The translations under genes were made by a program, and so were the position numbers. Under the pieces are notes generated by a model that was not told the DNA's origin, ran no database searches, and saw only the letters and a program-made list of their open reading frames with translations. A DNA stretch of 64,000 nt from the sequence record LC680884.1. One strand, given 5' to 3'. How positions within the stretch are numbered: the stretch's first letter is position 1; every line of letters starts with the position of its first letter. Of this stretch, positions 25,335 to 51,300 are shown piece by piece.

Positions 25335-27670
25335 TTATCTTAATATATTATTAAACTTACCTTGTAGTTCATAGAAGAAGTCAGCAAATTTATTACCAAC
25401 TCTATCTTTAATTCCTGAACCTCCATCAAGGAAAGTAGTAAACAATAATGAATTTGATAGTTTTCTATTAATTAATGATTTAAATTTAAGAAAACTTAAT
25501 TGGTCTGGTCTTATTCCTGCCATATTTTCTAAGAATGATGCAATTCCCAAATTATAAGCAAGTAAACCAATATCTTTAATTTGAATCATTTGCGGATATA
25601 AATCTACTACGTTCATATTAACTTCAATCATTTGCGGATGACCGTCAACTGTCCAAAGACTATCAGCTCCGCCTTTAGTAATAGTCAAGCTTGTTACTAC
25701 TCCCATATCTATGTCAAAATACATTATCTTCCATTAGATTCGCTACATCTAATGCGTTCTCTTATGAACTGCTCTATGTTTCCATAGAGATGAGACTATA
25801 TCTTCACCCTCTCTAAAGAGGGGATTCCCGTTTCCATTTAAGGGATTTTCACCCACTCCAAACACTTGAGCCGTACTCCTATTGCCTATTTTTAGGCTAC
25901 TCATAATCTAACGATTACTTTCGGATAGTCGTTGAACGTTATTATTAGTAAAGAAGTCTTCTAGAATTATATCAACAGTATCCCTATATTTATATGGTAT
26001 TCTTAAAAGTGGAATATTATTAATCTTACAATAATTATTTTTATATTATTTTGTTTATTTTACTATTGATATAATTTTTTATTACACAATCTAAAACTAA
26101 TAATCTTCGCTGCTGATTATCTTCATCACAACATGTTAAGACTTTCCAGCAATTAGAGAATGATTGTTTCTTATGATTACTCATAAGCCGAGCTATTTAG
26201 TTAACCCGGACGAGACATTCTTACAAAGAATGGTTGCTGATATCCTAATAAACCGTCTTGACGCATAACCTTCCACTGAGTCGCTACTTCAGTGCGTTCT
26301 CTTATGAACTGCTCTATGTTTCCATAGAAGTTGAGACTATATCTTCACTCCAGCTTTTTGCCTTCATCATGCTCTTTGTTTCCCATATAGTATTAGTTTA
26401 CTATACTTACATTTATGCCTAAATGTAACCACGCTTGTGGGGTACTCTACTTCCTTCCATCAAATGATGTGGTTTCGATAGTCGTTGAGCTAGTAACTTC
26501 CATGTGGAAGTTTTAACTAGTTGCTGATTGTCCAATCTTATTAGTTTTTAAACATTCACGCTCACTGTCACCAGTCACGTTGTAGTCTAATAAGCTCTAA
26601 GGATGTTCCAGCAGTTAAAAGAGTTTTAATTGCCCCGTCATTTAAGGCAATGCTAATGCTAATAGTGCTATAAAAGGTACATACACGTATCTAAATATAC
26701 TTTCTCTATCACCATAAGGACTATAAAATTTGAAACTAATATTATAAGATTTATCAAATCTAGAATCTTGCCAAAAGTCAGGGAACATTAATTGTGATCC
26801 ATTTACAACACGAAATAATGCATTTGATGTACGAGTGATAATTCCATCAAATGAACCTAATGATTCTAGTACACCAATTGGATTAGCCGCTTTAATTGAG
26901 TCAACAATACGAGATGTTGTACTTCCTGTAGGATATAATAAATCTGCTTCCCTTAAAGTAGCCGCTTTCTCACTTACCATTTCTGCTGTTCTAGAAGCCG
27001 CATAAGTATTATCAGCTGACTCAGAAATAGTTGTAGATTTATCTGCATAAAAACATAATCCATAATTTTTAAAACTATTATTAAAGTCATCTGAGAATCT
27101 ATATAAATCAAATATGCCATCCATTGCCATATATGAATGTATAGTACTTAACATAGTTTGTACATATTTAAAGTATTCAGAATAATCTGCTTTAAACCCT
27201 ATGAAACGAAGGTCATTACCACTTTTTACTCCTCTAACTCCAAAATTAAAAATACTATTTGGATTATTTTGAAAATCCATTAATGCACGAGAAAGAGTAG
27301 CAGGAATAATACGTTTTCCTGCTACGTCAATCATATTTCTATTAATAGATGGAATTCCGGGAACCATGTATATATTAGGAATATCTTGAATAATGGTTTG
27401 ATTGTATACTCTTCCCGAAGGATCCGCTAAATCATTGTAGTATAAAGGTAAGCCTAATACACTATCTGATTTATATGGATTCCATGTAGGTGTAGCATAA
27501 GAACCAGAACCACCCTTAGAAGATCCAATTAACGCTTCAAAACCATCAGTATATTCTACACTTGTTCCAAATCCACCTTTTGAATCTGAATTAGAGTTAC
27601 CTTCTTGGAAAAACTCATCTCCAATTATCTGTGACTGTTGTTCATCAACGTTTTGCTGTTCATCTGCCAT
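25335..27670 (-). CDS. Spliced tail-tube initiator/baseplate junction protein (T4 gp48/gp54-like), 490 aa; exons 27670-26645, 26263-26204, 25721-25335
   Basis: Removing two introns gives ...ALLALALP|RQDGLLGYQQPFFVRMSRPG|YFDIDMGVVTSLTITKGG...DGHPQMIEV in one frame; directly downstream of the tape measure gene. Confidence 0.8.
25722..26203 (-). mobile_element. Group I intron B (482 nt) with endonuclease relic
   Basis: P1 CCGGGU/GCUCGG with U-G; core elements AAUUGCUGGAA, AAUCAGCAGC, GUUCAACGACUA, GAUAUAGUC; terminal G at 25722. Confidence 0.9.
26264..26644 (-). mobile_element. Group I intron A (381 nt, ORF-less)
   Basis: P1 UUGCCU/GGGCAA; AACUGCUGGAA, AAUCAGCA, CUCAACGACUA, GAUAUAGUC; terminal G at 26264. 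Confidence 0.9.
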
Positions 27671-27687
27671 AATAAATCACCTCTCTA

Positions 27688-30600
27688 TTAATAACCCTTT
27701 AACATACTATCTGTCTCTGGAGAAATACTTGAAGAACTGTAATTTGAACCTGAAGAAGTATTATTGACTACTGTTGTTCCACCAAAACTTTTATTATCTC
27801 TAATATCAATAATGGCTTCAAGCATCTTAGCCAGAATACTATTTCCTTGTTTGCTGTTCTCATTAATTTGTTTAAGAATACTTTGCATTTGAGCAATTTC
27901 ATCAGAGTTCTTAAGCATTTCAGTAAAATCATTTCCAGTTATAGTACTTCCAGTGTTACTTTCTGAAGAAGAACTTGAAAGTTTTGGAATAGAGCTTAAT
28001 GGACTTACTAATGAACTTGATGCAGTCGATTTAATATTTGATGTTGTTCCAGTGCCAATTCCTAATGCAGAAAATGGATTACTTGAAGAATTGGAATTTA
28101 GATAGTTATTCTTAATACTATTCGCTTTAGAAATAGTATTATTTCCAATTGACCATCTTAAGTCTCCCATTGCTTTATCAGATGTTGAAAGTAAATTTGC
28201 CACATATGCAGAACCAGAAGTTAATGCTTTTCCAGCAGATGAACCAAGACTAAATCCACCAATACTCTTATATGATGAAGAAGGAGCTGAGTCATAACCT
28301 GCTGTACTATTTGTATAGCCTCCACCTGAAGAAGCTGAGTCAAATGGATTATCGTAAAATTGACTGCGATCATTCATAACCTTAGACGCTGTTGAACCTG
28401 TTGATGAAGAATCTTTTGTATCTTTATCACTATCAGATGAAGTATTTGCTTTTTCTCCACCATCTTTAGCTAACATTGCTAATGCATCTTTTTTCTCTCT
28501 TGAGAATCGGTTCACAACACCTTTACGAATAGCGGCAGAAGAACTAGGGAAATATTTCATACCATTATTAGCCGCACGCTCTTTATAAACTGCATTAATA
28601 ATTTCAGAATCAGACATATCATTTGCTTTACTACCAAGTGCATTCTTCCAAACATTAACAGCACCAGCAGTTCCATGTTGAACAGCAGTAGATAATAATA
28701 CCGCTTGAACAGCTGTAGAACGTTTACCAACATCTAAACCAATTGCAGATTTGATTTTACCTGCCGCTGGTCTAAAATATTGATCTGCAAAATATTGATC
28801 TTGAACTTTTTCAAATTCTTTTGGATTTTCCTTATATATCTTCTTCCACACTGCCGCACTTTGAGAGGTACTATTATAAGCTGATTTTAATTGTTTTTCC
28901 CAATCTTCATGACCATAATCACTAAGCTTATTAATAAAAGATTTATAAGACCCAGTATTTCTTGCAAGTTGATATTTACCAAATGATTGCCCACCAATAT
29001 CACCAGAACTATTTGCTACCGTTCCAGCATTACCACTAGACTCATATTTAGCGGCTAGTGCTCCAATACCAGAACCAATTTTACCAGTATAAGAATCGCC
29101 ACCTGAATTACTATCATCTTTTCCTCCACCAAATAAGCCTTTAAACCAGTTACCAATCTTATCAAAGATACCACCTGTTTTACCAGTAATCATTCCCCAG
29201 ATACCACTAAAGAATGTACCACCAGCACCAATTGAGAAGAATTTACCTAGTTTTTCGACCCAAGCAGAGATTTTATTAATAGGTTGCTTACTGTTTTCTC
29301 CCTTTTCAGCATCTCTTTTTTGATCTTCATCCTCTTTTTTTCCAAACATCTTAGAAAGTCCTAAAGCACCTAATCCTAATCCTCCACCAATACCTCCGGC
29401 GAGTAATAAAGGATTTTTCTTAACTGTACTTAATGCTTTTGAACCAAAATCTTTAATCTTGTTACCAAATCCATAAATCCCTTTTGAAACTTTTTCTTTA
29501 TCAGCTAAACCAAATGTAAGTCCACTTATAACACTACCTGCTCCTGCAGATACTTTTTGTCCTAAAGTAGCTTTTTCAGTTCCAAATATTTGGTTAGCGT
29601 TCTGAACGCCATTAATAGCATCCATAACACCCATTCCTGCTGTAGCAACTAATCCTACTCCCGGAATGAATTTTGCTAATCTACCTGCCCCTCTAAGTGC
29701 TGTTCCGGCTCCTCTAAGAAGTCCTTTAGCGCCTCCAGAAGCCGATCCTGCTACTCCACTAGCACCTGCCGCCGTAGTAGCCGCCTGTGTAGCTGATGCG
29801 CCTGTAGTTGCGGCTTGAGCAACTCCAGCACCCCCAGATGCCAATCCTGCACCAGCACCTAAAGCACCAATTCCTGCCATTCCTCGTCCACCTAGACGAG
29901 ATAATCCTCCACCAATTCGACTGAACATACCTCTAATTCCTCGTCCAGTTGATTGATTTCTTCCCATTCTAGTAGAGTTTTGTGCTAAATCAGTTGCTCC
30001 TTCAATAGCTTCAGATGCACCACCTCTATTGCGATTAAAGAGACCGCCAATTCTACCAAAGATTCCTCTCCGTCCAGCTCTTCTTCCAGCTCTAGTACCA
30101 GTATCTCTTCCTCCACGTCCAGCAATTTTATTTCCAATTACCTCACCAATAATATCACCTGCAATATTACTCAGTGTTCCGCTTAAAAAACCTCCACCAG
30201 AAGACTGTTCACCTGTAAGGTTATTTCTATTTCTTTTCTTTCTACCACCTTTTAAGTTTTGAAGAAGGCTATTTTCATTATTTTGACGTCTTTTTTTAAA
30301 CTCTGCAATTTGTTCTACTGCAGAGTTTCCATCACTAATATGTGTCTGAACCTTAACTACTTCTCGGATTTTATCTAGAGAACCGCCATCTACAAAGACA
30401 TGCAGTGAATCACTTTTACGATTAAATACTCTATCTATAATATCTGGCATTGAAAAAGATCTTCTATTAGAAGAAGATTTACTTTTTTTATGCCCTTTAC
30501 GACCAGATAGTTTATTACCAATACCTGAAGCGATATCTCCTACTTTTGAAATGCCTCTCATACCAAGGCTTAAGCTTCCACCAATAAGGCTACCTGCTCC

Positions 30601-33465
30601 TCCTATAACACTCCCAGTAGTACTTGTTAAAAGACCAAGTAAGCCTCTCATTCCTTTAATATTTCTATTTCCGCTTCTTCCTGCTCTACTTGCAGATCTA
30701 TTTGATCGAAGTTCTTTAGCTTTATCTAATCCTTTTTTACCTGCTCCAAGTATTAGTGAAAAAGCACTTTTACCAAAATTTAAAAATCCTTTTGTTACCT
30801 CTCCTGCAAATTTAGTTGCTTTTGGAATTGTTTTAGACGCAACATCCAAAACAGTTGTTAATGTACCAGAAACAAACTTGGTGATAATGCCATCTCTTCC
30901 TAGAAGTCTTGATGTAATAGATTGTCTTCCATTAGCACCTCTAATAGAATCCATTGCACCACCAAATAATTTAGATAAAAGTGAAGTTCTGGAACCTGAA
31001 TTACCAAATACCATTCCAATAAAGCCTTTAACTTTTTCTGCTGTTCTAGAGAAGAAACCTCCTGAATTAGATCTTCCTCTTCCAAATAACTTTTCAAAGA
31101 AATTAAGAGTTTTATCCTTATAACTACCAATAATATTTTTGAATTTTCCAATCCTACCTACTGGTAAGCCATCTCCACTAAATTTAGCTTCTAGTAATGC
31201 TATAATATGAAGAATATTATCATTAATCTTAGGGAGAATGGAAAGATCTGGGTTTTGTACATTCGTAGTTCTAATGGCAGTTGAATTAGTAGAAGAGGAT
31301 GTTTTCTCATCATTTCTACCTTCCATAATCCTATTATTACGTTCAATATTTCTATTTAACAGGAAGATACTTCTGGTGATACCTCTATCTCCACTAATTT
31401 CATTATTTACTTCTTCGATATTTTGATTTAAATTACTTAATTCTCTTGTTGTATTGTTACTACTAGTATCCTCAGTATTTGAAATAACAGGAATTGAAGG
31501 TGAAGTTCTTCTCTCAGGCATTAAACCATTTCTTGTATTTAATTTAGAAATAGCATTACTTCCTGTATTTACTACTCTACTAGCAAAATCTCTTATCTTA
31601 GATCCTCTATTTACTGTATTTTGCTGATTAGAAGAAGGTTGTTGAGGTCTAGTATATGCATATTCATTATTATCCTGACCATAAAAAAATTCAGAAGTTT
31701 TTCCATTAACTCTCTTGATACCTTCAGTTAACCAATAAAGAGGATTCTTTTTACTCATATTATTTTCTACTGGACCTTGACCAACGCCAAAGAATCTATC
31801 AATATTTGTTTTTACCCTTCTAGCCATTTCTTTATTAGTTTCAGGTTCAAATATTCTTTCTTCTTTTGTCATATCAAAGGCATTATTGAATGATTCATTT
31901 TGCTCAATTCTTCTATAAATATCAGAATAAGCTTTTGAAGCACTTAGCAGGTCATATTGATATTTAGACTTATTAGCATTTGTTTGACCCTTGAAGTTAT
32001 TTAAGATAGCATTAGCAACATCTTCGTCCTCCGAAATATCAGATGCCTTGCTATTACCATGAATCATTTTGCTATTTTTAACCATGGATAAAAGAGCTTT
32101 ATCAACTCTTTCCATAAAAGCAGATAATTCTTCACTGCTTGAAAATTTAGATTGATTCTCTCTTGCAATCTGTTCTTTATAATTAGTAAGATCGTAGTTA
32201 TCAATAGTGAAGTTTTTAATATCACTATTCATTTCTTTTATTACACGTTTTCTAGTAGTAAATTTTCCTTTATCATAATCATAAATAAGTTCTTCTTTAT
32301 GAGTTGAATTATTGCTAACACTAGCCAAAATTTTAGATAACAATGATGGAATTACATTAACAATAGAACGTCTAGTTACACCGTCAAATGCTACCTTTCC
32401 TTTTTCATAATTAGAAAAGTTAAATCCCTTATCTTCTTTTAGATCAATGCCAAATATTTTTGCGGCATTTCTCTTAAAGACATTATCGCTACCTTCCCAA
32501 TCTTTAGCTTTTCCTTGGATCATAGTAGGAAGAAATTTAAACATTTGATCCATATCACCAACAGCCGATTTTAAAGCTCTTGGTAAAGCTAACTTAATTG
32601 CATTTTTAGTTAAAGCTCCAATTGGATTTGCAACAACTTCATCAATATAAGGTTTAATAACAAGATTAAATGTATCTTTCATTCCACCAGTAGAATTAGA
32701 ATATTTTTTCCTATACATATCCTTCATTCCACTAACACTAAATCCTTCTAACCCTAATAATGTTGCAAGCATGGACTCGCCTTGTGTTCTTCTAGTTCCA
32801 CCTACTGAAACCTCAGCCATTACACCAAGGAATCCGGTCATCTGACTAACATCTCTTGTAATATCAGCCATTTTACTTGACATCTCTGTATAGAATCTGT
32901 TAGTGTTATTATGCTGGAATTCAATTAATGTAGAAATTTGTTTACTCAAAGCACTAGAATTATAATGACTCATCTTCATAGCTGAAGATGAAATAGTTGT
33001 TAATTGCTGAATGCTTTTAGAAGTAGATGGATCACTATTATTCACAAAAACATTTTGTTGAGTGTTATTGCTGGTATTGTGAATAGTTTTTCCATCTTTT
33101 TCTTTTGTTGTTTCTTTATTTTGATCTTCAAAATTAGTAAGATTATCTAAATCAATACCAAACATCTCTTTGAAAGAATCATTAGATGCTTGTTGTTGTC
33201 TTTCTTTATTATAGAAATTACCTGATTTAAGATCTCTAATTGCATTATTAATTAATTGCTGTCCAGATTTATAAATGTAGGTCTGTTTAACTTCATTAGG
33301 AGTTACTTTTTCTCTGGAAGAATTATATACTTCAGCAATATAATTTTTACTATCAATGCCTGAATTCTTCATACTAGGCATCATATCACCAAATGCTGAA
33401 GCTGTTGATCTTCCAAGTGATCTACCTACATTCTTAACGAATTTTGGTAATACTCTCATTGGCAT
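27688..33465 (-). CDS. Tape measure protein with lysozyme-like (VgrG3-type) muramidase domain
   Basis: 1925 aa, helical and Gly/Ala-rich; AAKYESSGNAG...GDIGGQSFGKYQL...STAVQHG motif near the C-terminus. Confidence 0.8.
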   Translation of the reverse strand: MPMRVLPKFVKNVGRSLGRSTASAFGDMMPSMKNSGIDSKNYIAEVYNSSREKVTPNEVKQTYIYKSGQQLINNAIRDLKSGNFYNKERQQQASNDSFKEMFGIDLDNLTNFEDQNKETTKEKDGKTIHNTSNNTQQNVFVNNSDPSTSKSIQQLTTISSSAMKMSHYNSSALSKQISTLIEFQHNNTNRFYTEMSSKMADITRDVSQMTGFLGVMAEVSVGGTRRTQGESMLATLLGLEGFSVSGMKDMYRKKYSNSTGGMKDTFNLVIKPYIDEVVANPIGALTKNAIKLALPRALKSAVGDMDQMFKFLPTMIQGKAKDWEGSDNVFKRNAAKIFGIDLKEDKGFNFSNYEKGKVAFDGVTRRSIVNVIPSLLSKILASVSNNSTHKEELIYDYDKGKFTTRKRVIKEMNSDIKNFTIDNYDLTNYKEQIARENQSKFSSSEELSAFMERVDKALLSMVKNSKMIHGNSKASDISEDEDVANAILNNFKGQTNANKSKYQYDLLSASKAYSDIYRRIEQNESFNNAFDMTKEERIFEPETNKEMARRVKTNIDRFFGVGQGPVENNMSKKNPLYWLTEGIKRVNGKTSEFFYGQDNNEYAYTRPQQPSSNQQNTVNRGSKIRDFASRVVNTGSNAISKLNTRNGLMPERRTSPSIPVISNTEDTSSNNTTRELSNLNQNIEEVNNEISGDRGITRSIFLLNRNIERNNRIMEGRNDEKTSSSTNSTAIRTTNVQNPDLSILPKINDNILHIIALLEAKFSGDGLPVGRIGKFKNIIGSYKDKTLNFFEKLFGRGRSNSGGFFSRTAEKVKGFIGMVFGNSGSRTSLLSKLFGGAMDSIRGANGRQSITSRLLGRDGIITKFVSGTLTTVLDVASKTIPKATKFAGEVTKGFLNFGKSAFSLILGAGKKGLDKAKELRSNRSASRAGRSGNRNIKGMRGLLGLLTSTTGSVIGGAGSLIGGSLSLGMRGISKVGDIASGIGNKLSGRKGHKKSKSSSNRRSFSMPDIIDRVFNRKSDSLHVFVDGGSLDKIREVVKVQTHISDGNSAVEQIAEFKKRRQNNENSLLQNLKGGRKKRNRNNLTGEQSSGGGFLSGTLSNIAGDIIGEVIGNKIAGRGGRDTGTRAGRRAGRRGIFGRIGGLFNRNRGGASEAIEGATDLAQNSTRMGRNQSTGRGIRGMFSRIGGGLSRLGGRGMAGIGALGAGAGLASGGAGVAQAATTGASATQAATTAAGASGVAGSASGGAKGLLRGAGTALRGAGRLAKFIPGVGLVATAGMGVMDAINGVQNANQIFGTEKATLGQKVSAGAGSVISGLTFGLADKEKVSKGIYGFGNKIKDFGSKALSTVKKNPLLLAGGIGGGLGLGALGLSKMFGKKEDEDQKRDAEKGENSKQPINKISAWVEKLGKFFSIGAGGTFFSGIWGMITGKTGGIFDKIGNWFKGLFGGGKDDSNSGGDSYTGKIGSGIGALAAKYESSGNAGTVANSSGDIGGQSFGKYQLARNTGSYKSFINKLSDYGHEDWEKQLKSAYNSTSQSAAVWKKIYKENPKEFEKVQDQYFADQYFRPAAGKIKSAIGLDVGKRSTAVQAVLLSTAVQHGTAGAVNVWKNALGSKANDMSDSEIINAVYKERAANNGMKYFPSSSAAIRKGVVNRFSREKKDALAMLAKDGGEKANTSSDSDKDTKDSSSTGSTASKVMNDRSQFYDNPFDSASSGGGYTNSTAGYDSAPSSSYKSIGGFSLGSSAGKALTSGSAYVANLLSTSDKAMGDLRWSIGNNTISKANSIKNNYLNSNSSSNPFSALGIGTGTTSNIKSTASSSLVSPLSSIPKLSSSSSESNTGSTITGNDFTEMLKNSDEIAQMQSILKQINENSKQGNSILAKMLEAIIDIRDNKSFGGTTVVNNTSSGSNYSSSSISPETDSMLKGY

Positions 33466-33525
33466 ACTATTTCACCTTCTTTACTTATAAAATAAAAAAA
33501 AAATAATTATTTATAAATTATATTA

Positions 33526-33537
33526 TATAATATTGTT
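33526..33537 (-). promoter_or_regulatory. AR9-type late promoter AACA-N6-TA
   Basis: AACA-ATATTA-TA upstream of the tape measure gene. Confidence 0.6.
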
Positions 33538-33647
33538 TATATAATAAAAAAATTAATATTTTAATATTAATAATAGAATAATAAGAGTTATATTATTATA
33601 ACCCTTATTACCCATTATTATTTTCTTGTTAATTATTTTCATTAAAA

Positions 33648-34055
33648 TTAATGATTATTAACTTCCATTTCAAGATTATCCATAAGTTTCAATGTAGATT
33701 CTAGATAAGGAATTAATTCTGGATCATTGTGTTCATAATTTTCTTTTAATTTAAGCTTTAAATAAAATTTTAACATAGACCATCTCCGTTCTTCTGAAAT
33801 TCTATTTTCAAAACAATCTTTAATTGAGAAGATAAGCTTATAGTCATCTTGTAAAGATTCAAAACCAGAGTTATTATATTCATTTAATAATTTTAAAGCC
33901 CTGTCAAATGGATTTAATGCTAAAGCATTTAATCTTTCTATTTCTTTTAAGACATTATGAACATGTTGAATTTCTTTCTTACAGGCAACTTCTCCAATAT
34001 AAATCTCAACTAAGCGCTGTCTTAAAGTTGACCAATTATCCATCTTCATTTTCAT
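33648..34055 (-). CDS. Hypothetical protein
   Basis: 135-aa ORF with GGGGGA RBS. Confidence 0.7.
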   Translation of the reverse strand: MKMKMDNWSTLRQRLVEIYIGEVACKKEIQHVHNVLKEIERLNALALNPFDRALKLLNEYNNSGFESLQDDYKLIFSIKDCFENRISEERRWSMLKFYLKLKLKENYEHNDPELIPYLESTLKLMDNLEMEVNNH

Positions 34056-34076
34056 TAATCCCCCTATTAATTATTA

Positions 34077-34433
34077 TTAAAAATCATGTCCATCTTCAGT
34101 TTTTTCAGTGGGAGTACCACTATCTAGATCTGGTACAGGGATATCATCTACTTCAAGAAGCTTATTTAATTTATCAATTAGATTTTTAGTCTCATTTAAT
34201 TCGTCAATATATTTTTGTAATTCATCAATATTAATATTTTCATAATTTCTTCCTCTTATAGTCACGAGAAATCTATTAATATTAAAATTAAATCTAACGT
34301 CAATGGACGATCCAGCGCAGTCTCTAATGTAAAATCCATGTGTAGTACTCCAAGTAATATCTTTATATTCATGTTTATTCAATAATTCTATAATTTCATT
34401 AAATTTACTAGGTATTTTCAAATATTCAGCCAT
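34077..34433 (-). CDS. Hypothetical protein
   Basis: 118-aa ORF with GGGAGA RBS. Confidence 0.7.
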   Translation of the reverse strand: MAEYLKIPSKFNEIIELLNKHEYKDITWSTTHGFYIRDCAGSSIDVRFNFNINRFLVTIRGRNYENINIDELQKYIDELNETKNLIDKLNKLLEVDDIPVPDLDSGTPTEKTEDGHDF

Positions 34434-34459
34434 CTTAGTCTCTCCCTTTATAACAACTT

Positions 34460-35428: not shown

Positions 35429-35465
35429 AAATAAATCTTATATATCTATTAAATCATTTTAAGAA

Positions 35466-35963: not shown

Positions 35964-36021
35964 ATATAGATCCCCTTAATCTTTATTTTCTTCATCCAAA
36001 AAATAATTCCCCTTACAATAT

Positions 36022-36060
36022 TAATGAAGGTAAATGAGATTATCTCATTTACCTTCATTA
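36022..36060 (-). terminator. Stem-loop downstream of the HU-like gene
   Basis: 19-bp perfect inverted repeat. Confidence 0.7.
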
Positions 36061-40739: not shown

Positions 40740-40764
40740 TATTATTTTATCGCATTATTAAAGT

Positions 40765-40776
40765 AACATTTTATTA
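40765..40776 (+). promoter_or_regulatory. AR9-type late promoter AACA-N6-TA
   Basis: AACA-TTTTAT-TA before the endolysin. Confidence 0.65.
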
Positions 40777-40804
40777 ATCTTAATTAAAGGAGGAACTTTT
40801 ATAT

Positions 40805-41977
40805 ATGGGTTACATTATTGATATTTCTCACCACCAACCTTCAAGTGCAATTGATTGGGCAAGAGCGGCTAAAGAAGTAGATCTTATGATTATTCGTGTT
40901 CAATATGGTTCAAAGACTATTGACCGAGAATACAAAAATCATGTGGCTAATTGTAAGAAATATGGCATTCCTTTTGGTCATTATGCTTATGGACACTATG
41001 TATCAGTTAAAGATGCTATTATTGAAGCAAATGATTTCTTAAGCCGTATTGATAAAGATGCTAAATTTCTAGCTCTTGATGTTGAGGATGATACAGTTGC
41101 ATCTTGCGGAACTGCTAATCTTAGAGAAGCTTCACAAGCATTTATTGATACTTGTAGAAAAGCTGGTTATAAGACTGGTTATTATGTATCTCACAATCTT
41201 TATATGTCTTATGGACTGAATAAAGTTGATGCTGATTTCTTATGGATTCCTCGTTATGGTCGTAATGATGGTACAGCTAATAAAAAACCAGATTTCCCTT
41301 GTTGCATCTGGCAATATACCGAATATGGGAAAGTATCATGGTATAACGGTACTCTTGACATGAATTTACTAAATGGTGATAAATCACTTACTTGGTTTAC
41401 TGGTGGAGTTAAAAAAGTTGTTAAAACAGAATCTGCTGTAAAACCAGTTACAGTGTCAGCACCTAAAAAAGAAAGTAAACCTTCTGGTACGTACACAGTG
41501 CAAAAAGGTGATGTTCTTTCCAAAATTGCTAGTAAATTTGGAGTTTCTGTTTCTACTCTTCAAAGTATTAATAGAATTAAAGATCCAAATAAAATCTATG
41601 TAGGTCAAGTTCTTAAACTTAGCGGTAATTCTAAATCAGTAAGTTCTACTAAGACATCTAGTTCTTCTACAACTTATAAAGTAAAAGCAGGAGATAATTT
41701 AACTGCTATTGCTAAGAAATTTGGCTCTACAGTTAATGCTATCGCATCAGCTAACGGAATTAAAGATCCAAATAAAATTTCTGTAGGACAAACACTTAAA
41801 ATTCCTACTAGTGGTAGTTCCACTAAATCATCTGTACAGTATTATACTGTAAAAGCAGGAGATAATGTATCAGCTATTGCTAAGAAATTTGGCTCTTCAA
41901 TTGATCAAATTAAATCATGGAATAAATTAGTTGATGTTAATAAAATCTATGTAGGGCAAAAATTAAGAGTCAAATAA
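40805..41977 (+). CDS. Endolysin: GH25 muramidase with three LysM domains
   Basis: [27 protein letters not shown], then three Y.V..GD....IA.KFG...NKI.VGQ.L LysM repeats. Confidence 0.92.
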
Positions 41978-41989
41978 TTGGGAAACAAG

Positions 41990-42027
41990 ATAAGCATACC
42001 TCTAAAAAAGGGTATGCTTATTTTTTA
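41990..42027 (+). terminator. Intrinsic terminator
   Basis: ATAAGCATACC / GGTATGCTTAT followed by T6. Confidence 0.8.
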
Positions 42028-42045
42028 TATTTTTACTAAATTAAA

Positions 42046-42057
42046 AACAATTATTTA
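42046..42057 (+). promoter_or_regulatory. AR9-type late promoter AACA-N6-TA
   Basis: AACA-ATTATT-TAG. Confidence 0.6.
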
Positions 42058-42059
42058 GA

Positions 42060-42452
42060 GTGGAGGTGAACTTATTGATTAATCAGAATCAAATAAAGGG
42101 TATCATTGGTAACACTATTAAGGAAGATATTCTTAGCTTACAAAAGAATTCCCTATCAGTAAACTCAAAAAGTGAGACTAAAGATTTTACTAATATAACA
42201 AATTTAACTGAAATATTTAATATGTCTAATATATTAAATACGATTGGGGGAACATCTGTAATAAGCTGTAGTATTAATATTAAAAACAAAAATTCTATAG
42301 CTATTCCTTTTAAGATTACATCATTAGGTTCGGTATTACATGAAGGAAATATAGATGCAGGAAAAGTAATGGCATTTTCTTCACAAAGAAGTGATCTTGT
42401 CATTTCTATAGGAGGAAACTGTACATTAACTTATTCTATTAAAAGTATCTAA
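42060..42452 (+). CDS. Putative tail/fibre-associated protein
   Basis: First gene of a late operon; start probably the GTG after GGAGG. Confidence 0.55.
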   Translation: MEVNLLINQNQIKGIIGNTIKEDILSLQKNSLSVNSKSETKDFTNITNLTEIFNMSNILNTIGGTSVISCSINIKNKNSIAIPFKITSLGSVLHEGNIDAGKVMAFSSQRSDLVISIGGNCTLTYSIKSI

Positions 42453-42463
42453 GGAGGATATTT

Positions 42464-44425
42464 ATGAGTGTAATTTATTCAATTGGTCAAGGAAATTTCT
42501 CAATTACAAGAGATAATTTTACTTCTTTTCCTTTGTTTCAGGAAGAGAGTAATACAATTTTAATTAATGGAAAGACGTATAATAAAAATTCTTTACAAGA
42601 AGAGAAAGTTGCAAGATCACCATACTTTAGTTATTCTGCCCCATATAATGCAAATAATATTAATACTAGAACAAGAACTCATAGTATAAATTATGATGGT
42701 AGAACAGCTTTTGTAGGAGGACGTATACCATATCGCAAAGATGAAACCATTTTTCAAAATTCAATTTCGTTTAATGATGGTACGGAAATTAGAGTATCAG
42801 AAAGTTCTGGAAATACAGCAACTGCTATCTATCAATATAAGTATGGAAAAATTTTAAATACTTATAGATTTTCGAATGGATTAGGAAAAACATCATTAGT
42901 TAAACTAGATGAAAGCTCATTCATTGTTGTTAGAAATATGATAAATTATGGAGGATTTGGGATAAATAATATTGGAAGTACTAGTTCTCCTCCAGCTAAT
43001 GGTGAAAATGCTAAAATTGATTTATACGGAAAAGAGTATTTTGAACTAAATAGAAGTTCTTCTAATGTAATAGTGAATGGAAACTACTATTCCAATTGCA
43101 CTTATTCTGCCGCTGCTCTTAATCAATACAGTTTAGCTTCAACATCAACAGCATATAATACCGTTAATTTAAATGATAGTATTCTACTTTTTGATAAAAA
43201 CTTAAACTTAACTAAAAGTTACACTTTAAATGGAGAAGAAATTTTAAATATTCTAGGTAAAACTTCTAATGGCAGTTTAATTATTTTAACACAAGGTTAT
43301 ATTTTTAATAATGAAACTATAACAAAAGAAGATGGTACAACATATACAATGTCTGGTCCAAAAACAAGATTGCTAGTAAAGAAGATTTCACCAACATTAG
43401 TTGAAACGGTTTTATTCAGTAAAAATATTCATGCTGGATCAACAACAGGATATTCCACATTTGCTAGACAAATACCATATTTTGATTCTAAAGAAAGCTG
43501 TTTATATTATTTACAAATGGAATATATAACTGGTTCAAGCAGTTCTTTATGTAAGTTACCTATAGATATTCCTAATGGAAAAGTAGGTACGGTGACAAAT
43601 CTTAGTATTAACGGATTAGATTTAAAAACACTTTACAATTATCAAGATTATGGTTTAAATCTTTACTCAATTCAAATTGGTTCAATCACTGTTAATAATA
43701 CTAAATACCTATATATTGGAAATGTATTCTCGCATTTAAATGAAATCTTTTATACCGATTGGATTAACTATTATAAAAGAGCATCAGTTTCAAACCCAAG
43801 ATCTGGTTCATTAAATGCATCATATCTTGCAGATACCTATAAAACAAAAGAGTTCCCAATTCATCTTTTAGAATTTGATGATACTGAATTAAATTTAACT
43901 TTAAAAGATTCTCTACCATTCAAAGATATTCATTTGGATGGCGTTAAGGCAATTTTCCCTCTAGGTGATCAATTTATTGTTATTGTTAAAAATAATGGTT
44001 TTTGGGTATATACTACTGATTCCACTACAAAGAGATTTTCATTGATTGAGAATATTACTGATCCAATTAGATCTATAGGCATTGATGATTTAGAAAGAGT
44101 TTGGTTTATAAGAAATAAAGAAGGTGCTAATTTAGAAATGATTAGTCCTTTCTTGTCAGTTGATGTCTCAGTTAGTTTCGAAGATACAGATATTACCTAT
44201 GTGGATCAAAATATTGAAAGTGCAATATTAGTCGAGGCAAGAGATATGACAGGACAATTAAAAGAAACAGAGATTAAATTAATGCTTGAAGGAAATGCAA
44301 TATTTAGAGATAGTCAAGATAAATCATATAATGTTTCTACAAGCTCAACATCACCTACGAGAGTACCAATTATAATAACTGGTTCAGGAGCCATTTCTAC
44401 TTATACTTCTTATGAAGGGAGTTAA
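42464..44425 (+). CDS. Putative receptor-binding/tail fibre protein (beta-rich)
   Basis: 653 aa, Ser/Thr/Asn/Tyr-rich, Ig-like C-terminus. Confidence 0.5.
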   Translation: MSVIYSIGQGNFSITRDNFTSFPLFQEESNTILINGKTYNKNSLQEEKVARSPYFSYSAPYNANNINTRTRTHSINYDGRTAFVGGRIPYRKDETIFQNSISFNDGTEIRVSESSGNTATAIYQYKYGKILNTYRFSNGLGKTSLVKLDESSFIVVRNMINYGGFGINNIGSTSSPPANGENAKIDLYGKEYFELNRSSSNVIVNGNYYSNCTYSAAALNQYSLASTSTAYNTVNLNDSILLFDKNLNLTKSYTLNGEEILNILGKTSNGSLIILTQGYIFNNETITKEDGTTYTMSGPKTRLLVKKISPTLVETVLFSKNIHAGSTTGYSTFARQIPYFDSKESCLYYLQMEYITGSSSSLCKLPIDIPNGKVGTVTNLSINGLDLKTLYNYQDYGLNLYSIQIGSITVNNTKYLYIGNVFSHLNEIFYTDWINYYKRASVSNPRSGSLNASYLADTYKTKEFPIHLLEFDDTELNLTLKDSLPFKDIHLDGVKAIFPLGDQFIVIVKNNGFWVYTTDSTTKRFSLIENITDPIRSIGIDDLERVWFIRNKEGANLEMISPFLSVDVSVSFEDTDITYVDQNIESAILVEARDMTGQLKETEIKLMLEGNAIFRDSQDKSYNVSTSSTSPTRVPIIITGSGAISTYTSYEGS

Positions 44426-44430
44426 GTAAA

Positions 44431-45012
44431 GTGATTGTTAAAACTAGATTAACTTATTTAAATGGTTTTAAAATAAAAAATGAACTTAATGTTAAAGATG
44501 GAAAAATTACGGATTTAAATAATCCTGATAACCATATAATAACAAATACCTTTTATGTTAGAAATATTACTGACTCTATAGGAAAAACGCAAGCAACTTT
44601 ATGTAATTTTAATTCTAATAAACCTGTATTAAGTGGTTTTTCCAATCTGATTGTTAAAGAAAATAAAAAAGATAAAGTATTTTTGACTAATGTAACTTCA
44701 CTTAAATCAACAATTGATGTTAAAATGGACTATACTATTTACCTAAAACCTTCTGTAAATGGTCTACAAGACTTTTCAATTAATGCAGTTTCAGGACATT
44801 CACTAACCGTAAAATTAAATACAAGTGAAGTATCTCTTATTAAACAGGTTAAAGGATTGCCTTCAAGTTTGTATTATGATGCTGATAGTGAAATGATCAA
44901 AGGAACTCCATTAGTTCTTGGTGATTTTGTTATTACAGTAGTTCTTAAAAATAAGAGCGAAGTATTGATTAACTTGAAGGTTTCTAGTGAATATGAAACG
45001 AAAACTGTATAG
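44431..45012 (+). CDS. Ig-like (He_PIG-type) domain protein
   Basis: GLPSSLYYDADSEMIKGTPLVLGDFVITV. Confidence 0.55.
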   Translation: MIVKTRLTYLNGFKIKNELNVKDGKITDLNNPDNHIITNTFYVRNITDSIGKTQATLCNFNSNKPVLSGFSNLIVKENKKDKVFLTNVTSLKSTIDVKMDYTIYLKPSVNGLQDFSINAVSGHSLTVKLNTSEVSLIKQVKGLPSSLYYDADSEMIKGTPLVLGDFVITVVLKNKSEVLINLKVSSEYETKTV

Positions 45013-45014
45013 GG

Positions 45015-45284
45015 GTGTCAACTATGGAAAGTCATGATAAGCAATTTATACTCAGACAAGAAAAAGATGGAAGATGGGTTACAGATGGTTACTTTATTCC
45101 TAGTGGACAACAGTTCTATTACCAACCATTTGATCCTTATACTCAAGAAAATTTTAAAGATAAAGATGATTTAATTAGATATATAAAAAGTGAATTTTCA
45201 TTTTCAGATGAATCTGATACTATAGATAATAATATTATTACTATTTATAATAAAGATAAATTGAATGAAACTATAACAGAGTAA
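45015..45284 (+). CDS. Hypothetical protein (possible fibre assembly factor)
   Basis: 89-aa ORF ending the operon. Confidence 0.55.
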   Translation: MSTMESHDKQFILRQEKDGRWVTDGYFIPSGQQFYYQPFDPYTQENFKDKDDLIRYIKSEFSFSDESDTIDNNIITIYNKDKLNETITE

Positions 45285-45290
45285 ATAATA

Positions 45291-45318
45291 AAAAGATAAG
45301 GATAATACCTTATCTTTT
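45291..45318 (+). terminator. Intrinsic terminator
   Basis: AAAAGATAAGG / CCTTATCTTTT plus T tract. Confidence 0.8.
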
Positions 45319-45338
45319 TATTTTTAATTTCTTATGTA

Positions 45339-45350
45339 AACAAATAGATA
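45339..45350 (+). promoter_or_regulatory. AR9-type late promoter AACA-N6-TA
   Basis: AACA-AATAGA-TA upstream of the RNAP gene. Confidence 0.65.
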
Positions 45351-45375
45351 TTGTTAAGAAAGGAAGTGGGTATAA

Positions 45376-48300
45376 TTGTTTTATCTTGATAATCTCAAGG
45401 AATTGAGAGTGTACTCTAATATAAAACTTTCATCCATTAAAAAAAGGAAAAATGACCGTAATTCAAATTTGATTTTCTTTTCAGGAAATAATCAAAGTGA
45501 AATATTTGATTTTATTAATTCTAATATATTCAGTCCTTCTTTTTTTAGAGGAGTATATATTCCAAGAGCATTCAATACTGTTCAAAAGAATAAAAGAATT
45601 ATTGTAGATCAAAAGAAATATTATGATGAGGTAAAAGCAAAATGCTCCAGTATTATTTATACTAAACGTGCTTTAACTAATTATAATGATCTTAACTTGA
45701 TCTATGATATTACAAATGAGCATCTTGAGAATGAAGTAGAGATTAAAGTTCGTGGAAGAAAACGAGTTGAAATGTATTTTGAGTTTCTTATATCTAAAAT
45801 TAAAGAGGGCGCATCATATGAGAATAAAGCAGTAGCAATTCCTGTTCCTGACAATGTTCTTGATCCATCATTCTTTGACTTAAATAATGCAAGAACACCT
45901 TTTGCTTATATCTATATGGCAATTAAAAGAAAGTTGTTAACAGAGGAACAGAAGAAAGAGCTTAAGAATGTAGACTTTATTTTTTATACTACAGTTAATA
46001 ATACATTTATTAAATTCAATATTAATGATGAACTTTCTAATCTTCTTGCAAATAGATTCCTTAATGCATTAAATATTCTTATTAAAACAGCAAATCATCA
46101 GAGGACTAATAATGATGAAAAACCTTTAGGTAAAGAAGATGCAACTCAAGAAACAGAAAACAAGAGAGATGCATTAGTAAAAGAAAAATCTGAAAAAGTT
46201 AAAGAAAAATTATTAAGTAATTTCCAAATTGATGGAAATACAAAATTATCCAGTAGTGCAATTGAAGTTACTGATAAGATTGGTGATGATATTGAAAAAG
46301 CTATTGATTCAAGTGATGAAGATATTCTTGATAAAAGTGAAGATGAAATCATTGATATCTTAAATAACAGTAAGGAATTAAAAGCTGATGTTTCAACTCT
46401 TAAAGAGCTTCAGTCTACTGGTGGAGATGAAATTAAACAGAGAAAGACTCTTGAACGCCTAAAAGAAAAACAAAAACAAGTTACTCTTGATGATATTAAT
46501 ATTCAAGATATTATTGATGATTTTAAATCAACAAGTATTGACCGAAAGCCAATTACCAATACAAATGTTATTCAAGAAGAAACTAGATATTCAAATCTTA
46601 AAGATTTTGATATGAGCTACTTTGAGAAACAGATGAAAAAAGACTTAGTTGCAGTTCTTTCATCATTTAATGGAGATAGCGATGTTAAATTATTTGTAAG
46701 TGATATTAAAACAGAAGACACATCTACTGATTTATCAAAGAAATTAACTTACACTGTTACTTTCCAAGATGATCGTAATGTAAAGCATACTGTTAAATTT
46801 GATTATCCTATTATCAGAGATGGTAGGTTTATGAATATTAATGGTGGTAAAAAATTAATTCTTAAGCAAATTCTATCTTTACCCATTGTAAAAACAAAAC
46901 CTGATGAAGTTCAGATTACTACTAACTACAATAAGTTTTTTGTCATGCGCTTTGGTTCTAAGCTATCTCATAAAACTGAGAAACTTAAGAAGCTTTTTGG
47001 TATGGATCTAAATGAATTTAAAGTATCAGGTAAGAAGTTTAATTATCGTCTAGGTAACGCTCTAACAATTAATGAGGGATATGAAACAACTCTTGAATAT
47101 AATGAAATCTCTTCCTTCCTTCTAAGCTTAGAGAATGATGAATATAAACTTATGTTCAGTCAAAAAGAAGTAGAAGATTTATTGAAAAGTGATCTTGATA
47201 ATATGGCTAAGCTTGCTAAGATTAATATTGATGATAAACAATTCTTACCAATCGGTCATACAAAAGATAATGAAAATGTTATTGCTCTTAAGCGTTCAAG
47301 TAAAAGAGTTTATCTGATTAATAATAAGAAACAAGAAAATACTGATATGAGTCTTTCAGAACTCATTATTAAAGTTGTTGTTACTTCACTTAGTGAGGAA
47401 GCTTATAAAAAATTATCTTCTTTAAGTAATTCTAAGTCTCTAGCATATAACCGAGTTCGTATTAATAATAGAATGATTCCTTTAGTGGTTCTTCTTGGAT
47501 ATGAATTAGGATTAGAAGATTTATTAGAAAGATATAATATTGAATATAGCTTTGATACTAAGAATAAGAGAATTACAATTGATGATGACTATGATAAGAT
47601 CCGTTTTAAAGATGGATACCTATATTATAATAATTCTTTATTGAGAAATTCCTTATTATTAAGTGGTCTAAGTACTATGGCTACTGAAGAGTATACATTT
47701 GAAGAAATGAACTCTAAAGATCCTTATATTGAAACTTTCTATGAGATGTTTGGTAGCAGAAATATGGGTAAAGGTCTCCATAATACTCTATCTCTAATGG
47801 TTGATCCTATCACATTAGATGTACTGAAACAGTTAGAATTACCTGAGAATATCTATGACATATTGTTGTATGCGAATACCTTATTGGAAGATATGAGCTA
47901 TAGTCCACTGAATGATATGAATTCATATCGAATCCGTGGTACTGAGCAAGTAAACGCCTACTTGTATAAAATCTTGGCAGATTCATTTAAAACGTATAAG
48001 GATACACTGAAAGCTGGTAATCCTATTAAGATGTCTGTTCCACAGGATATTCTATTAAAGACATTAATGAATTCACCTACTGTCGATGAATATAGTGTCC
48101 TTAACCCTTCTTTGGAAATTGAAAAGGGTGGTGCGGCTACTTACAAGGGGCTTTCAGGAAGGAACTTGGATTAAAGTGTTTTAGTCCAATTAAAACCTCT
48201 TTAACTGCTGGAAAACCCTTAGAGCCTTTAATACCAAATCTATATGGAAACATAATAGATGGCTGAATATAACAATTCAGGTATGGTAAAAATTTAAAGG

Positions 48301-51300
48301 ATTGGGTAATCATAAGCAACCAAGTACCTAAGTTACAAATTATTTGTAATAAGGTAAAGGTTCAACGACTATCGAAACCACTCTAACAGATCATTACAAT
48401 AATGCTAGTTAGTGGAAGGGAGTAGAGTACAGTCTAAGCGATTGAGGCTGGAAATGGGAGGCACTTTTAAGTGATGATATAGTCTCGTCTCTAGGGAAAC
48501 TTAGAGCAGTTCTAAGGAACGGTATAGGTGTAGCGAACCTATATGAAGGAAAACGGATGCTTATACAACTGATATTCGGGCTTATGACCCTAGTATGCGT
48601 GGAATCATGGCAATGTCAACACCCGACTCGGATTGAATTATTATAATTCTTGAATTCCCAGACAAGATTTATAATAGTCCCTTATAATAGAAATATTATA
48701 AGTAAACCTCTTTAACTGCTGGAAAATCCTTTAAGGACAATCAGCATCCAAGACTCATTAGAGTAAGGTTCAACGACTATCGAAACCACTCTAACAGATC
48801 GTTGTGATAACGCTAGTTAGAAGGAAGGGAGTAGAGTACAACTCAAGCGATTGGAGTTGGAAATGGGAGGCATCCTAATAGGATGATGATATAGTCTCAT
48901 CTTCATGGTAACATGAAGCAGTTCATAAGAGAACGCATTAGATGTAGCGAATCTAGTGGAAGATAATGAAAGTTGGGGTGAATTAAACTGCCCCCTTATA
49001 TAGTGATATATAATGATAAAATCTCTCTAACTACGGGAAACTCCTAATAATAGGACAATCCGTATCGAAGACTCTCGTTAAATATATATTATAATAGTAG
49101 TAAGTTAAAAAGGAGAGCTACTATTATGGAAAAAAATAAAATAATATATCTAAAAGAACAAAAATTATGGAGAGTAAGTTTCTATAATAAAGAAAAGAAA
49201 TCAAATTCCCTTGCACATTATTCAGAAGTTTTATATGGAGATTATAGTGAGCGTATAGCTATGAAAACATTAAAAGAAGGAAAAAGAGCATATAATTTTA
49301 TTGAAGTATTAGATGATCATGCATTATTAGTTACTTTTTCAAAAACATATGGTATCGTAAAATCTCAAATTGATATTGAAGATATTGATAAAATAAATAA
49401 GCATGTTTGGAGAGCTATCTGGTCTAAAAGAAATAATTCATTTTATATTTCAAGTAATTCAGGTGGAAAGCTTCATAGATACCTAATGGATATTAAAGAT
49501 AATAATAATGTAATTGATCATATAGATAGAAATAGTTTAAATAATAGAAAAAGTAATTTGCGTGAGGTTTCTCAAATGATGAATAATAGAAATACATCAC
49601 TAAGAAACGATAATACTTCTGGAATTAAAGGAATAAGATATTCTAAAAAGAAAAATAGATGGGAATCTGAAATCCGTGTTAATCATAAAAAATTTATTAA
49701 AACATTTGCAGTTAATAAATATGGTTTTGAAAAAGCTAAAGAACTAGCAATTACTTTTAGAAAAGAAATTGCTGAGAAAAACGGTTTTATAAATTATTTT
49801 TAATTATAACGAGAGTAACGTTCAACGACTATCCTTTAGTGGTTAACACACAATAGGAGTACGGCTCAAGCGATTGGAGTGGGTGAGAATCCCTTAAATG
49901 GAAATGGGAGATATCTAGTCATCTCCTTTCTTTTTTTTTGACTAGATAAAGATATAGTCTCATCTCTATGGTAACATAGAGCAGTTCATAAGAGAACGGT
50001 ATAGGTGTAGCGAACCTATATGAAGGTAATGGGTTAGACAGTTAACTTTTGATCCAGCATTCAAAAACACACGAGGATTCTTAGACACCAATCCTAATAC
50101 AAAAAATAATACGACAAATATCTATGGTCCGGCAGAGTTATTAAACTCCTTTACTGCTCGTCATGCCGACCCACCGCGCGTTGGAATGCAAACAACGCAG
50201 CAAAAGCATGATTCGTGCCTAGTAGTAGTAATATTGCTAGCAAAACCCTTTAACTGCTGGAAAATCCTAAAGCCTTTAGTACCAAAGTGTAACAATCTAA
50301 AGGATATATGGACAATCAGCATCCAAGCATTGTTATAAATAACAATGAAGGTTCAACGACTATCCGAAAGCAATCTTAGGATTGTGAGTAGCGGTGAAAT
50401 TCCGCAATAGGAGTACGGCTCAAGCGATTGGAGTGGGTGAGAATCCCTTAAATGGAAATGGGGGTTATCCTTAATAGATAAGGATAGTGATATAGTCTCG
50501 TCTCTATAGAAATATAGAGCAGTTCATAAGAGAACGCATTAGACGTAGCGAATCTAATGGAAGTTAACGATCATTCCTACCACAAAGCAATCTAAACCTC
50601 TATTTGGTAGTGGTGTAGAGAAGACTGTCGCTTACATTCTAAGTGACGACTTTGTGTTTAGAGCAAAAAAAGATGGAGTTCTAGAGTCCATAGATGAAGA
50701 ACATGAGTTAGCTGTCGTTCGTTATAATGATGGTAAGAAAGACGTCATTGATCTCTCCGAGCATATGAGTAAGAACAGTAATGGTGGTTTCTATATTTCC
50801 AATCGTAAAGAACTCATTATCAAAGTAGGAGAGAAATTCAAAAAAGATGATATCCTAGCGAAGAATCCAAGTTATTTCCTTGGCGATAAGAAAGATGATA
50901 TCACGTATACTACAGGGAAGCTTTGTAAAGTAGCACTAGCAAGCGCAGATTACACATATGAAGATAGTAGTATTATCACAGAAAGCTTATCTCAAGACCT
51001 ATCTACTAAGATTACTATGAAGAAAGAACTTGCTCTTGGAGTTAACTCAAACATTGACTTTATTGTTAAGAAAGGCGATATGGTTAAAACTGGTGATCCA
51101 CTGATTATCTTTGAAAACTCTTTTGAAGATAAATCACTCAACCAACTCTTAGATAAACTAGGAGATGACTTTAATGAGACTATTAATGAGTTATCTAAGA
51201 ACAAAGTAAGTTCTAAATATACTGGTAAGATTGTAGATGTTGTAATGTACTACAATAAAGATATCAGTGAGTTTTCTCCTTCAGTACAAAAGATTCTGAA

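Follow-up and report, generated by a model that had tools for sequence, protein, structure and literature searches.

The group I introns of the Bacillus jumbo phage PBS1 very probably constitute a 13-copy family that has been repeatedly overwritten by ectopic gene conversion among its copies; because family members would keep copying each other's pieces, each intron has become a patchwork. The window, i.e., the whole stretch of 64,000 nucleotides analyzed here, matches positions 1-64000 of LC680884.1 identically and contains six group I introns: the virion RNA polymerase beta gene holds four (i1 to i4) and a virion structural gene two (A and B). The first-pass annotation of this DNA had read the introns as one spreading family, the ribozyme domains of which are shuffled by intragenomic recombination or gene conversion, and this reading is supported by tree conflict, the PHI test, triplet tests and replaced blocks in orthologous introns. 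Exchange of ribozyme parts does occur, but its units are continuous stretches of DNA flanked by conserved core and not RNA domains as such. The introns and the micro-exon in the window are as follows:

25722..26203, minus strand: intron B, 482 nt, with a type Y domain, a type b P9.1 hairpin and an AT-rich P6 insert; RF00028 47.7 bits.
26264..26644, minus strand: intron A, 381 nt, with a P5 extension like that of paralog N251, a short type X domain, a P8 like that of paralog T3 and its own P9.1 type; RF00028 56.1 bits.
48172..48555, plus strand: intron i1, 384 nt, with a P5 extension, a type X P7.1-P7.2 domain and a type a P9.1 hairpin; RF00028 65.3 bits.
48634..48968, plus strand: intron i2, 335 nt, with a short P5, a type X domain and a type b P9.1; RF00028 102.4 bits.
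48969..48979, plus strand: micro-exon of 11 nt separating i2 and i3, from the reading frame compared with Goe21 and from RNA.
48980..50031, plus strand: intron i3, 1052 nt, with a type Y domain, a type a P9.1 and an endonuclease ORF in the P6 loop; RF00028 51.7 bits (3' half), with an RNA joint.
50210..50569, plus strand: intron i4, 360 nt, with a P5 extension, a type Y domain and a type b P9.1; RF00028 81.5 bits.

All six belong to a single family of subgroup-IA-type self-splicing group I introns, with about 13 copies in PBS1 and about 5 to 20 in sister phages. The PBS1 RefSeq record and the genomes of AR9, Internexus, Goe21 and BpSp have been used for comparison, and the number of RF00028 matches is about 13 in PBS1, 13-15 in AR9, about 20 in Internexus, about 5 in Goe21 and about 10 in BpSp. 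Five introns in the window score 51.7-102.4 bits against the cut-off of 50 bits, and intron B lies slightly under it (47.7 bits, E = 1.9e-10). Compared with the Rfam model, the five better-scoring introns have about 35-95 additional nt between P7 and P3', and this insert folds as a single branched hairpin or as two or three hairpins. Extra P7.1/P7.2 helices at this place assign the introns to subgroup IA (IA2-like).

Boundaries were read in all six introns from a U at the 5' exon end that pairs with a G in P1 and from the terminal G; positions 25722 and 50569, which the first-pass annotation gave as outer ends, are the terminal G of B and i4. Intron-less Goe21 alleles, in which i1 and B are cleanly absent, fix the boundaries of two of the six, and those of intron A come from the reading frame, P1 pairing and the terminal G. 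The structural gene hosting A and B is annotated in AR9 as a 3-piece join. The P1 guide sequences (IGS) are site-specific, as had been proposed, and each forms a U.G pair at the splice site. For the polymerase gene, which is the gene covered by splice evidence from RNA contigs, i1 to i4 splice in vivo exactly at the boundaries derived here. The joints 48171>48556 (i1 removed) and 50209>50570 (i4 removed) were each found in four runs, and the joint 48633>50032 (i2 and i3 removed) has the micro-exon inside, its exact 11 letters lying between the joint sides in RNA runs X1, X3 and X4. Other joints in the RNA contigs (e.g., 48807>50489) were rejected as splicing and are assembly jumps via shared modules. 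This is a practical warning that intron repeats lead to short-read cross-joining of copies.

The introns differ in which modules they combine. Typing of the middle module (X in i1, i2 and A; Y in i3, i4 and B) and of the 3' hairpin (a in i1 and i3; b in i2, i4 and B) agrees with the first-pass annotation, so that every X/Y by a/b combination is represented among i1 to i4; in intron A the hairpin is of a third type, absent from that annotation. Both reported identities are exact, one of 58 nt for type Y and the other of 33 nt for type a, and intron B differs from the type Y block at 4 of 59 positions.

49851..49908, plus strand: type Y block of i3, identical to 50405-50462 of i4; it stops at the first intron-specific base of P3'.
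48517..48549, plus strand: type a P9.1 hairpin of i1, identical to 49994-50026 of i3; the helix is backed by covariation.

The middle module is a real unit, but it is better named the P7.1-P7.2 peripheral domain, with the true P3' at its 3' edge. Similarly, the 5' extension said to group i1, i4 and A is present in those three, but it is a P5 extension with three different sequences, of which the i4 version matches that of paralog T3 and the A version that of paralog N251. Compensatory stem changes were found in P9 and P9.1, with double changes in 9 of the 18 consensus pairs among 13 copies. P3 (6-7 bp) shows intron-specific covariation in 12 of 12 copies, and identity blocks between introns end at P3'. 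An element formed by AGTAGAGTAC / ATAGGAGTAC was considered as P3' and rejected, since better-scoring Rfam alignments and covariation put P3' after a GGAAAN motif; Rfam's weaker alignment, that of intron A, also takes this element as P3'. The type Y block shares 91% identity with the lysK intron region of K-like Staphylococcus phages and 78% with the SPbeta bnrdF intron. Since it is kept as far as Staphylococcus phage K, the 58-bp identity alone is little proof of exchange, and constraint could account for part of the perfect match between i3 and i4.

Domain trees, whose congruence the first-pass annotation had named as the outcome speaking against shuffling, are incongruent: for 12 PBS1 copies, the 5', middle and 3' partitions each reject the ML trees of the other partitions (delta lnL 69-93, p-AU <= 4e-5). 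The recombination tests assume independent sites, and unlike module types align poorly; read in this light, the PHI test gave p <= 0.0005 and 37 of 1320 triplets were significant after Bonferroni correction in an exact 3SEQ-type test. Corrected triplet p values are 1.9e-5 for i4, 2.1e-5 for A, 2.9e-4 for i2, 8e-4 for i3 and 1.8e-3 for i1, and this test gave zero significant triplets for intron B. When one strand of the consensus stems was dropped, the triplet signal stayed for i1, i2, i4 and A, and the in-window i3 triplet became weaker (p = 0.07). Within the i1-i4 quartet, 11 sites support i1 with i2, all in the middle region, 10 support i1 with i3, seven of them in P9.1, and four support i1 with i4. 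Pairwise compatibility of whole-module types revealed a single strict conflict, between the P7.2/P3' region and P9.1; because most module types are singletons, this test is too permissive to be informative.

Orthologous introns of AR9, Internexus and Goe21 differ from those of PBS1 by whole hairpins, and in four events the differing hairpins fall in runs of 64-81 nt that recur, letter for letter, in another intron of the genome concerned. The event that marks PBS1 itself lies in the window:

50294..50364, plus strand: 71-nt run in i4 identical to paralog T3, spanning the P5 3' strand, P4', P6 and P7, with the PBS1-specific converted P6 hairpin.

AR9 and Goe21 have at this place the other P6 hairpin, which is found in no other intron; outside P6, i4 of AR9 is identical to that of PBS1 and that of Goe21 has two further differences. 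The other events concern intron N28 of AR9, in which an 80-nt run made up of P9 and P9.1 is identical to T3 and all six differences from PBS1 and Internexus turn into T3 bases, the tail of Internexus i2, which matches Internexus B exactly over 81 nt, and AR9 T4, which has a P6 loop matching T3 inside a 64-nt run. The donor intron of the converted blocks is kept in all three phages, and most donors are located outside the window. By our tally, more than half of about 40 differences between PBS1 and AR9 in orthologous introns lie within converted blocks. Judged from the sequences, these block differences are direct evidence of non-allelic conversion, a claim that spans donors in the same genome and in a co-infecting genome, since the two look alike in sequence; we infer the direction of each event. 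BpSp paralogs have common identical runs of 53-75 nt, and the BpSp ortholog at the i4 site has in common with PBS1 i4 only core runs of 14-21 nt. In PBS1, its sister phages and BpSp alike, the copies behave as a repeat family evolving in concert through ectopic gene conversion.

Another explanation is that the mosaics were made elsewhere, either being a patchwork already on entry or arising by allelic swaps between co-infecting relatives, with no exchange between sites in one genome. Related domains are indeed found in Staphylococcus, SPbeta-like and Vibrio phages, metatranscriptome contigs contain additional intron alleles, and very close relatives differ sharply in intron and endonuclease content, which indicates frequent exchange between phages. 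We nevertheless regard this origin as unlikely, because the block brought in by each of the four events matches a different-site intron of the same genome without a difference over 64-81 nt, and a donor at a different site that is kept in three phages requires non-allelic sequence movement at some point; later allelic spread fits ectopic conversion too. Much less probable still, and already largely refuted, is that structural constraint and convergence suffice, the shared blocks being immutable ribozyme parts and the conflicts parallel compensatory substitutions. It would explain why distant phages have kept both the type Y block and the 3' core, and why many hairpin-type differences are paired changes. 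The identity, however, runs on through loops and linkers, alternative types are separated by indels and by as many as 10 positions, and a whole hairpin of other length distinguishes orthologs whose remaining sequence is identical or almost so. The six of six T3 bases among the AR9-specific N28 changes and the size of the partition-tree conflict tell against it as well.

False chimeras made by short-read assemblers that cross-joined near-identical copies deserve mention, since Logan RNA contigs do jump between paralogous introns (joints 48225>48362 and 48807>50489) and their loose ends carry intron A sequence. We give this the least credence of all, because independent PBS1 records agree with each other (100% in the polymerase region and 99.9-100% at the other locus), the main X/Y by a/b pattern is also present in AR9 and Internexus, and the exon junctions are confirmed by spliced RNA contigs.

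Under ectopic gene conversion, every copy would retain its own P1 guide sequence, which sets the splice site, and its own P3 helix, while the parts between core segments, namely P2, the P5 extension, P6, the P7.1-P7.2 domain, P8, P9 and P9.1, would be exchangeable. Overwriting would be short non-reciprocal copying from another intron copy, leaving identical runs of up to 64-81 nt. The DNA homology that seeds exchange may come from core stretches of 11-18 nt that hardly vary (the P4 strand, the J6/7-P7 stretch, P7'-P9.0 and the linker before P9.1); exchange presumably takes place during phage recombination or break repair, and selection on P3 pairing may limit tract ends. A further idea, which we offer tentatively and think somewhat more apt to fail than to hold, is that core sequences double as recombination anchors, so that the 13-20 copies form a self-homogenizing network in which conversion outpaces point mutation and only P1 (the address) and P3 (the lock) escape. 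If true, such a network could keep endonuclease-less copies splicing-competent, and the escape of P1 and P3, the latter kept intron-specific by its long-range pairing, would decide which natural chimeras are viable.

The AR9 group I introns (Lavysh et al., 2016, Virology 495:185) are the orthologous elements, and the AR9 polymerase gene is annotated as a 6-piece join. PBS1 differs from AR9 by missing its fifth polymerase intron and by the other i4 P6 hairpin. Later papers on AR9 describe mature mRNAs as experimentally determined and intron regions as highly plastic. Within the searchable literature, in which the AR9 genome paper is represented by citations, we found no description of mosaicism or conversion among AR9 or PBS1 intron copies; the introns are already known from AR9, and the patchwork pattern appears to be undescribed.

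Domain shuffling in phage T4 was reportedly described by Bryk and Belfort in 1990, recombination between different group I introns at shared conserved elements yielding chimeric introns; these are said to have been laboratory crossovers deleting the DNA between introns. In contrast, the PBS1 exchanges are natural, non-reciprocal and short, leave essential host genes intact and involve 13 or more copies. The introns of Staphylococcus phage Twort and K-like phages and of SPbeta bnrdE/bnrdF, which we take to be subgroup IA2, are likewise Firmicutes phage introns, often several per gene, but those genomes have few copies as against about 13 in PBS1, and module exchange among them has, to our knowledge, not been reported. 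Mosaic group I sequences in the yeast chimeric mitochondrial omega intron have been attributed to gene conversion (Wu and Hao, 2014; PMC4059233), but there the two copies involved, one native and one acquired horizontally, share a site, whereas PBS1 copies occupy different sites. Natural evidence for swapping of peripheral parts of group I ribozymes is scarce, and here several recent swaps are directly readable from phages differing by 1-3%. The PBS1 family provides ready-made chimeric ribozymes validated in vivo and a testable rule, that P1 and P3 are private and all else between conserved core segments is exchangeable, and conversion is a possible reason why introns lacking an endonuclease of their own are maintained in a phage genome.

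Within PBS1, only i3 contains an endonuclease ORF, which a Pfam scan, run exon by exon, types as HNH plus AP2:

49126..49803, plus strand: predicted HNH-AP2 homing endonuclease ORF in i3; Pfam AP2 7e-14, and HNH_3 7.5e-5, slightly below cut-off.

The ORF is annotated in AR9 as an HNH homing endonuclease, and Internexus has the same intron i3 without it. Orthologs of i4, A and B in Internexus or Goe21 carry CapR/treble-clef/DUF2726-type ORFs.

The window is identical to LC680884.1 of Bacillus phage PBS1 (100% identity, identical coordinates) and has a GC content of ~28%. Among its relatives, AR9, Internexus and Goe21 are at 96-99% identity to PBS1, and BpSp is further away. Within the window, Rfam RF00028 found five group I introns over the cut-off, and the sixth, B, scored 47.7 bits. 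Intron boundaries were placed by means of alleles that lack the intron, the reading frame, pairing in P1 and the terminal G, and those of i1 and B are exactly fixed because Goe21 cleanly lacks both introns.

Introns and short exons of the two split genes
48172-48555, + strand, intron i1 (boundary derivation; intron-less allele in Goe21)
48634-48968, + strand, intron i2
48969-48979, + strand, 11-nt exon between i2 and i3
48980-50031, + strand, intron i3 (P6 loop holds an HNH_3 plus AP2 ORF)
50210-50569, + strand, intron i4
26644-26264, minus strand, intron A
minus strand, 60-nt exon between introns A and B
26203-25722, minus strand, intron B (RF00028 47.7 bits; intron-less allele in Goe21)

Each exon was scanned singly for domains. 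The host gene of i1-i4 encodes the virion RNA polymerase beta subunit, with Rpb2 domain 6 in the last exon, and that of A and B encodes a virion structural protein; the AR9 annotation gives the two genes as six-piece and three-piece joins, respectively. The introns and their splicing are already known from AR9, and experimental mapping of mature mRNAs has been published for AR9. In RNA-library contigs from a 2017 pure-culture study and 2024 food-fermentation metatranscriptomes, we found the joints 48171>48556 and 50209>50570, a joint 48633>50032 enclosing exactly the 11 letters of the micro-exon, and one fully spliced contig of 1488 nt. Therefore, all four mosaic polymerase introns are active in vivo at the derived boundaries. 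Other joints, between paralogous introns, are read as assembly artefacts through shared sequence. Public short-read RNA contigs hop between paralogous introns (window 48187, 48381, 48807 and others), e.g., with intron A sequence fused to i1, and metagenome assemblies of such phages may therefore hold false intron chimeras.

The first-pass annotation proposed that the introns are mosaics of shared modules, produced by intragenomic recombination or gene conversion. Its 58-nt (i3/i4) and 33-nt identities were found again, as were the four mismatches of intron B to the type Y block, and all four combinations of the two middle-module versions (X, Y) with the two P9.1 hairpin versions (a, b) occur among i1-i4. 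Its compensatory stem changes were borne out in P9, the 4-bp linker helix and P9.1, where 9 of 18 pairs have double changes across 13 copies. The middle module exists as a shared block, and its identity had to be revised: the better-scoring Rfam alignments place P3' immediately after the GGAAAN motif, upstream of P8, so that the module is the peripheral P7.1-P7.2 domain, a usual feature of subgroup IA. Paired in this way, P3 has 6-7 bp in each of the 12 copies, with intron-specific covariation, and P7.1-P7.2 identity blocks end at the first intron-specific P3' base (58 nt in i3/i4, 42 nt in i2 and the paralog T2, and 75 nt in BpSp c/d). Since P1 guide sequences also differ from site to site, as had been claimed, P1 and P3 are private to each intron and the remainder is exchangeable.

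The intron family extends beyond the window (~13, 13-15, ~20, ~5 and ~10 RF00028 copies in PBS1, AR9, Internexus, Goe21 and BpSp, respectively), ranging from ~5 in Goe21 to ~20 in Internexus despite 96-99% identity elsewhere in the genomes. The outside PBS1 copies were fetched and named T1-T4 (a cluster of four), N28, N225 and N251, and all copies were cut into modules at conserved anchors. Module sharing among them is reticulate: i4 has its P5 extension, P6 and P9.1 in common with T3 and its P7.1-7.2 domain in common with N225, i3 and B; intron A has a P5 extension as in N251 and P8 as in T3; and i2 has runs in common with T4 (78 nt) and N28 (76 nt), plus a separate block in common with T2. 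In the i1-i4 quartet, informative sites joined i1 to i2 (11, all in the middle region), to i3 (10, of which 7 in P9.1) and to i4 (4).

Site-wise tests count paired changes more than once and modules of unlike type align poorly, and the following values should be read accordingly: PHI with permutation gave p <= 0.0005 for the six introns and <= 0.001 for both the four polymerase introns and twelve copies, and in an exact 3SEQ-type maximum-descent test 37 of 1320 triplets passed Bonferroni correction (best corrected p: i4 1.9e-5, A 2.1e-5, i2 2.9e-4, i3 8e-4, i1 1.8e-3), with no significant triplet for intron B. The triplet signal survived for i1, i2, i4 and A after one strand of each consensus stem was dropped. 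Maximum-likelihood trees of the 5', middle and 3' partitions rejected one another (delta lnL 69-93, p-AU <= 4e-5, p-SH <= 4e-4), and the domain trees are therefore incongruent. The perfect type Y identity of i3 and i4 is less telling than it appears, because this block, with 91% identity to the intron in lysK of K-like Staphylococcus phages and 78-83% to SPbeta and Vibrio phage introns, is a slowly evolving domain. A Goe21 intron (L022 7965-8165) is a natural X/Y hybrid, in which an X-type linker motif (GAGTAGAGTAC) is joined directly to Y-type hairpins, with the breakpoint within the shared GAGTAC motif.

Differences between orthologous introns of near-identical phages are mostly clustered, and in four cases one allele is embedded in an extended stretch that an intron elsewhere in the same genome matches exactly. 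PBS1 i4 shares with T3 a 71-nt run containing the P6 hairpin, while AR9 and Goe21 have in common a shorter i4 P6 found nowhere else, and downstream of this cluster differ from PBS1 at 0 and 2 further positions, respectively. AR9 N28 departs from both PBS1 and Internexus at six positions of P9 and P9.1 and has the T3 base at each of them, which makes an 80-nt identical run; the Internexus i2 tail matches Internexus B over 81 nt; and AR9 T4 has the P6 loop of T3 inside a 64-nt run. Of the ~40 differences between orthologous introns of PBS1 and AR9, by our own tally over half lie inside blocks of this kind. Three polymerase-gene introns of BpSp are identical to one another over runs of 53-75 nt, yet the BpSp intron at the i4 site has only 14-21-nt core runs in common with PBS1 i4, although the two agree in splice site and guide sequence, which is a pattern of concerted evolution. 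Donor and recipient may have resided on a single molecule or on two genomes that co-infected a cell, either of which would fit the sequences.

Reciprocal crossovers between intron repeats would cause loss or inversion of essential DNA, and therefore only non-reciprocal copying would be expected to survive. The near-invariant core stretches of 11-18 nt bordering each variable hairpin would be obvious candidates for the homology that strand invasion or template switching needs, and recombination-dependent phage replication or repair of endonuclease breaks could provide the occasion. Recombination between T4 introns has reportedly been demonstrated in the laboratory, and in the literature searched we found no description of mosaicism or ectopic conversion in the PBS1/AR9 intron family. 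Chimeric introns of yeast mitochondria have been attributed to same-site conversion (PMC4059233).

The polymerase gene has three distinct insertion sites inside 11 nt (window 48634-50031; L022 6868-8230; L040, the latter two from relatives): i2 and i3 flank the 11-nt exon in PBS1, and the Goe21 and BpSp intron sits between those sites (GT^T GGx). Upstream of the GMQ motif, BpSp carries one more intron. At window 50790-50792, the polymerase gene of AR9 and Internexus holds a fifth group I intron, of 302 nt (L016 6909-7210), which PBS1 and Goe21 lack. Endonuclease ORFs have been gained or lost within otherwise orthologous introns (L021 8400-9506; L019 1409-2314, 2577-3602; L020 1469-2413; L022 7046-8080). 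Internexus i3 lacks the HNH-AP2 ORF, and in Internexus and/or Goe21 the P5-P6 region of introns i4, A and B houses CapR/treble-clef/DUF2726-type ORFs, which are absent there in PBS1. Just downstream of the polymerase gene, a free-standing 587-aa ORF (51770-53533, +) with weak CapR and treble-clef zinc-finger matches resembles the endonuclease family of a 2025 phage group II intron paper (PMC12350094). Three tandem imperfect repeats of ~170-180 nt each (41569-41971, +) within ORF 40805-41977 look like a repeated protein domain.
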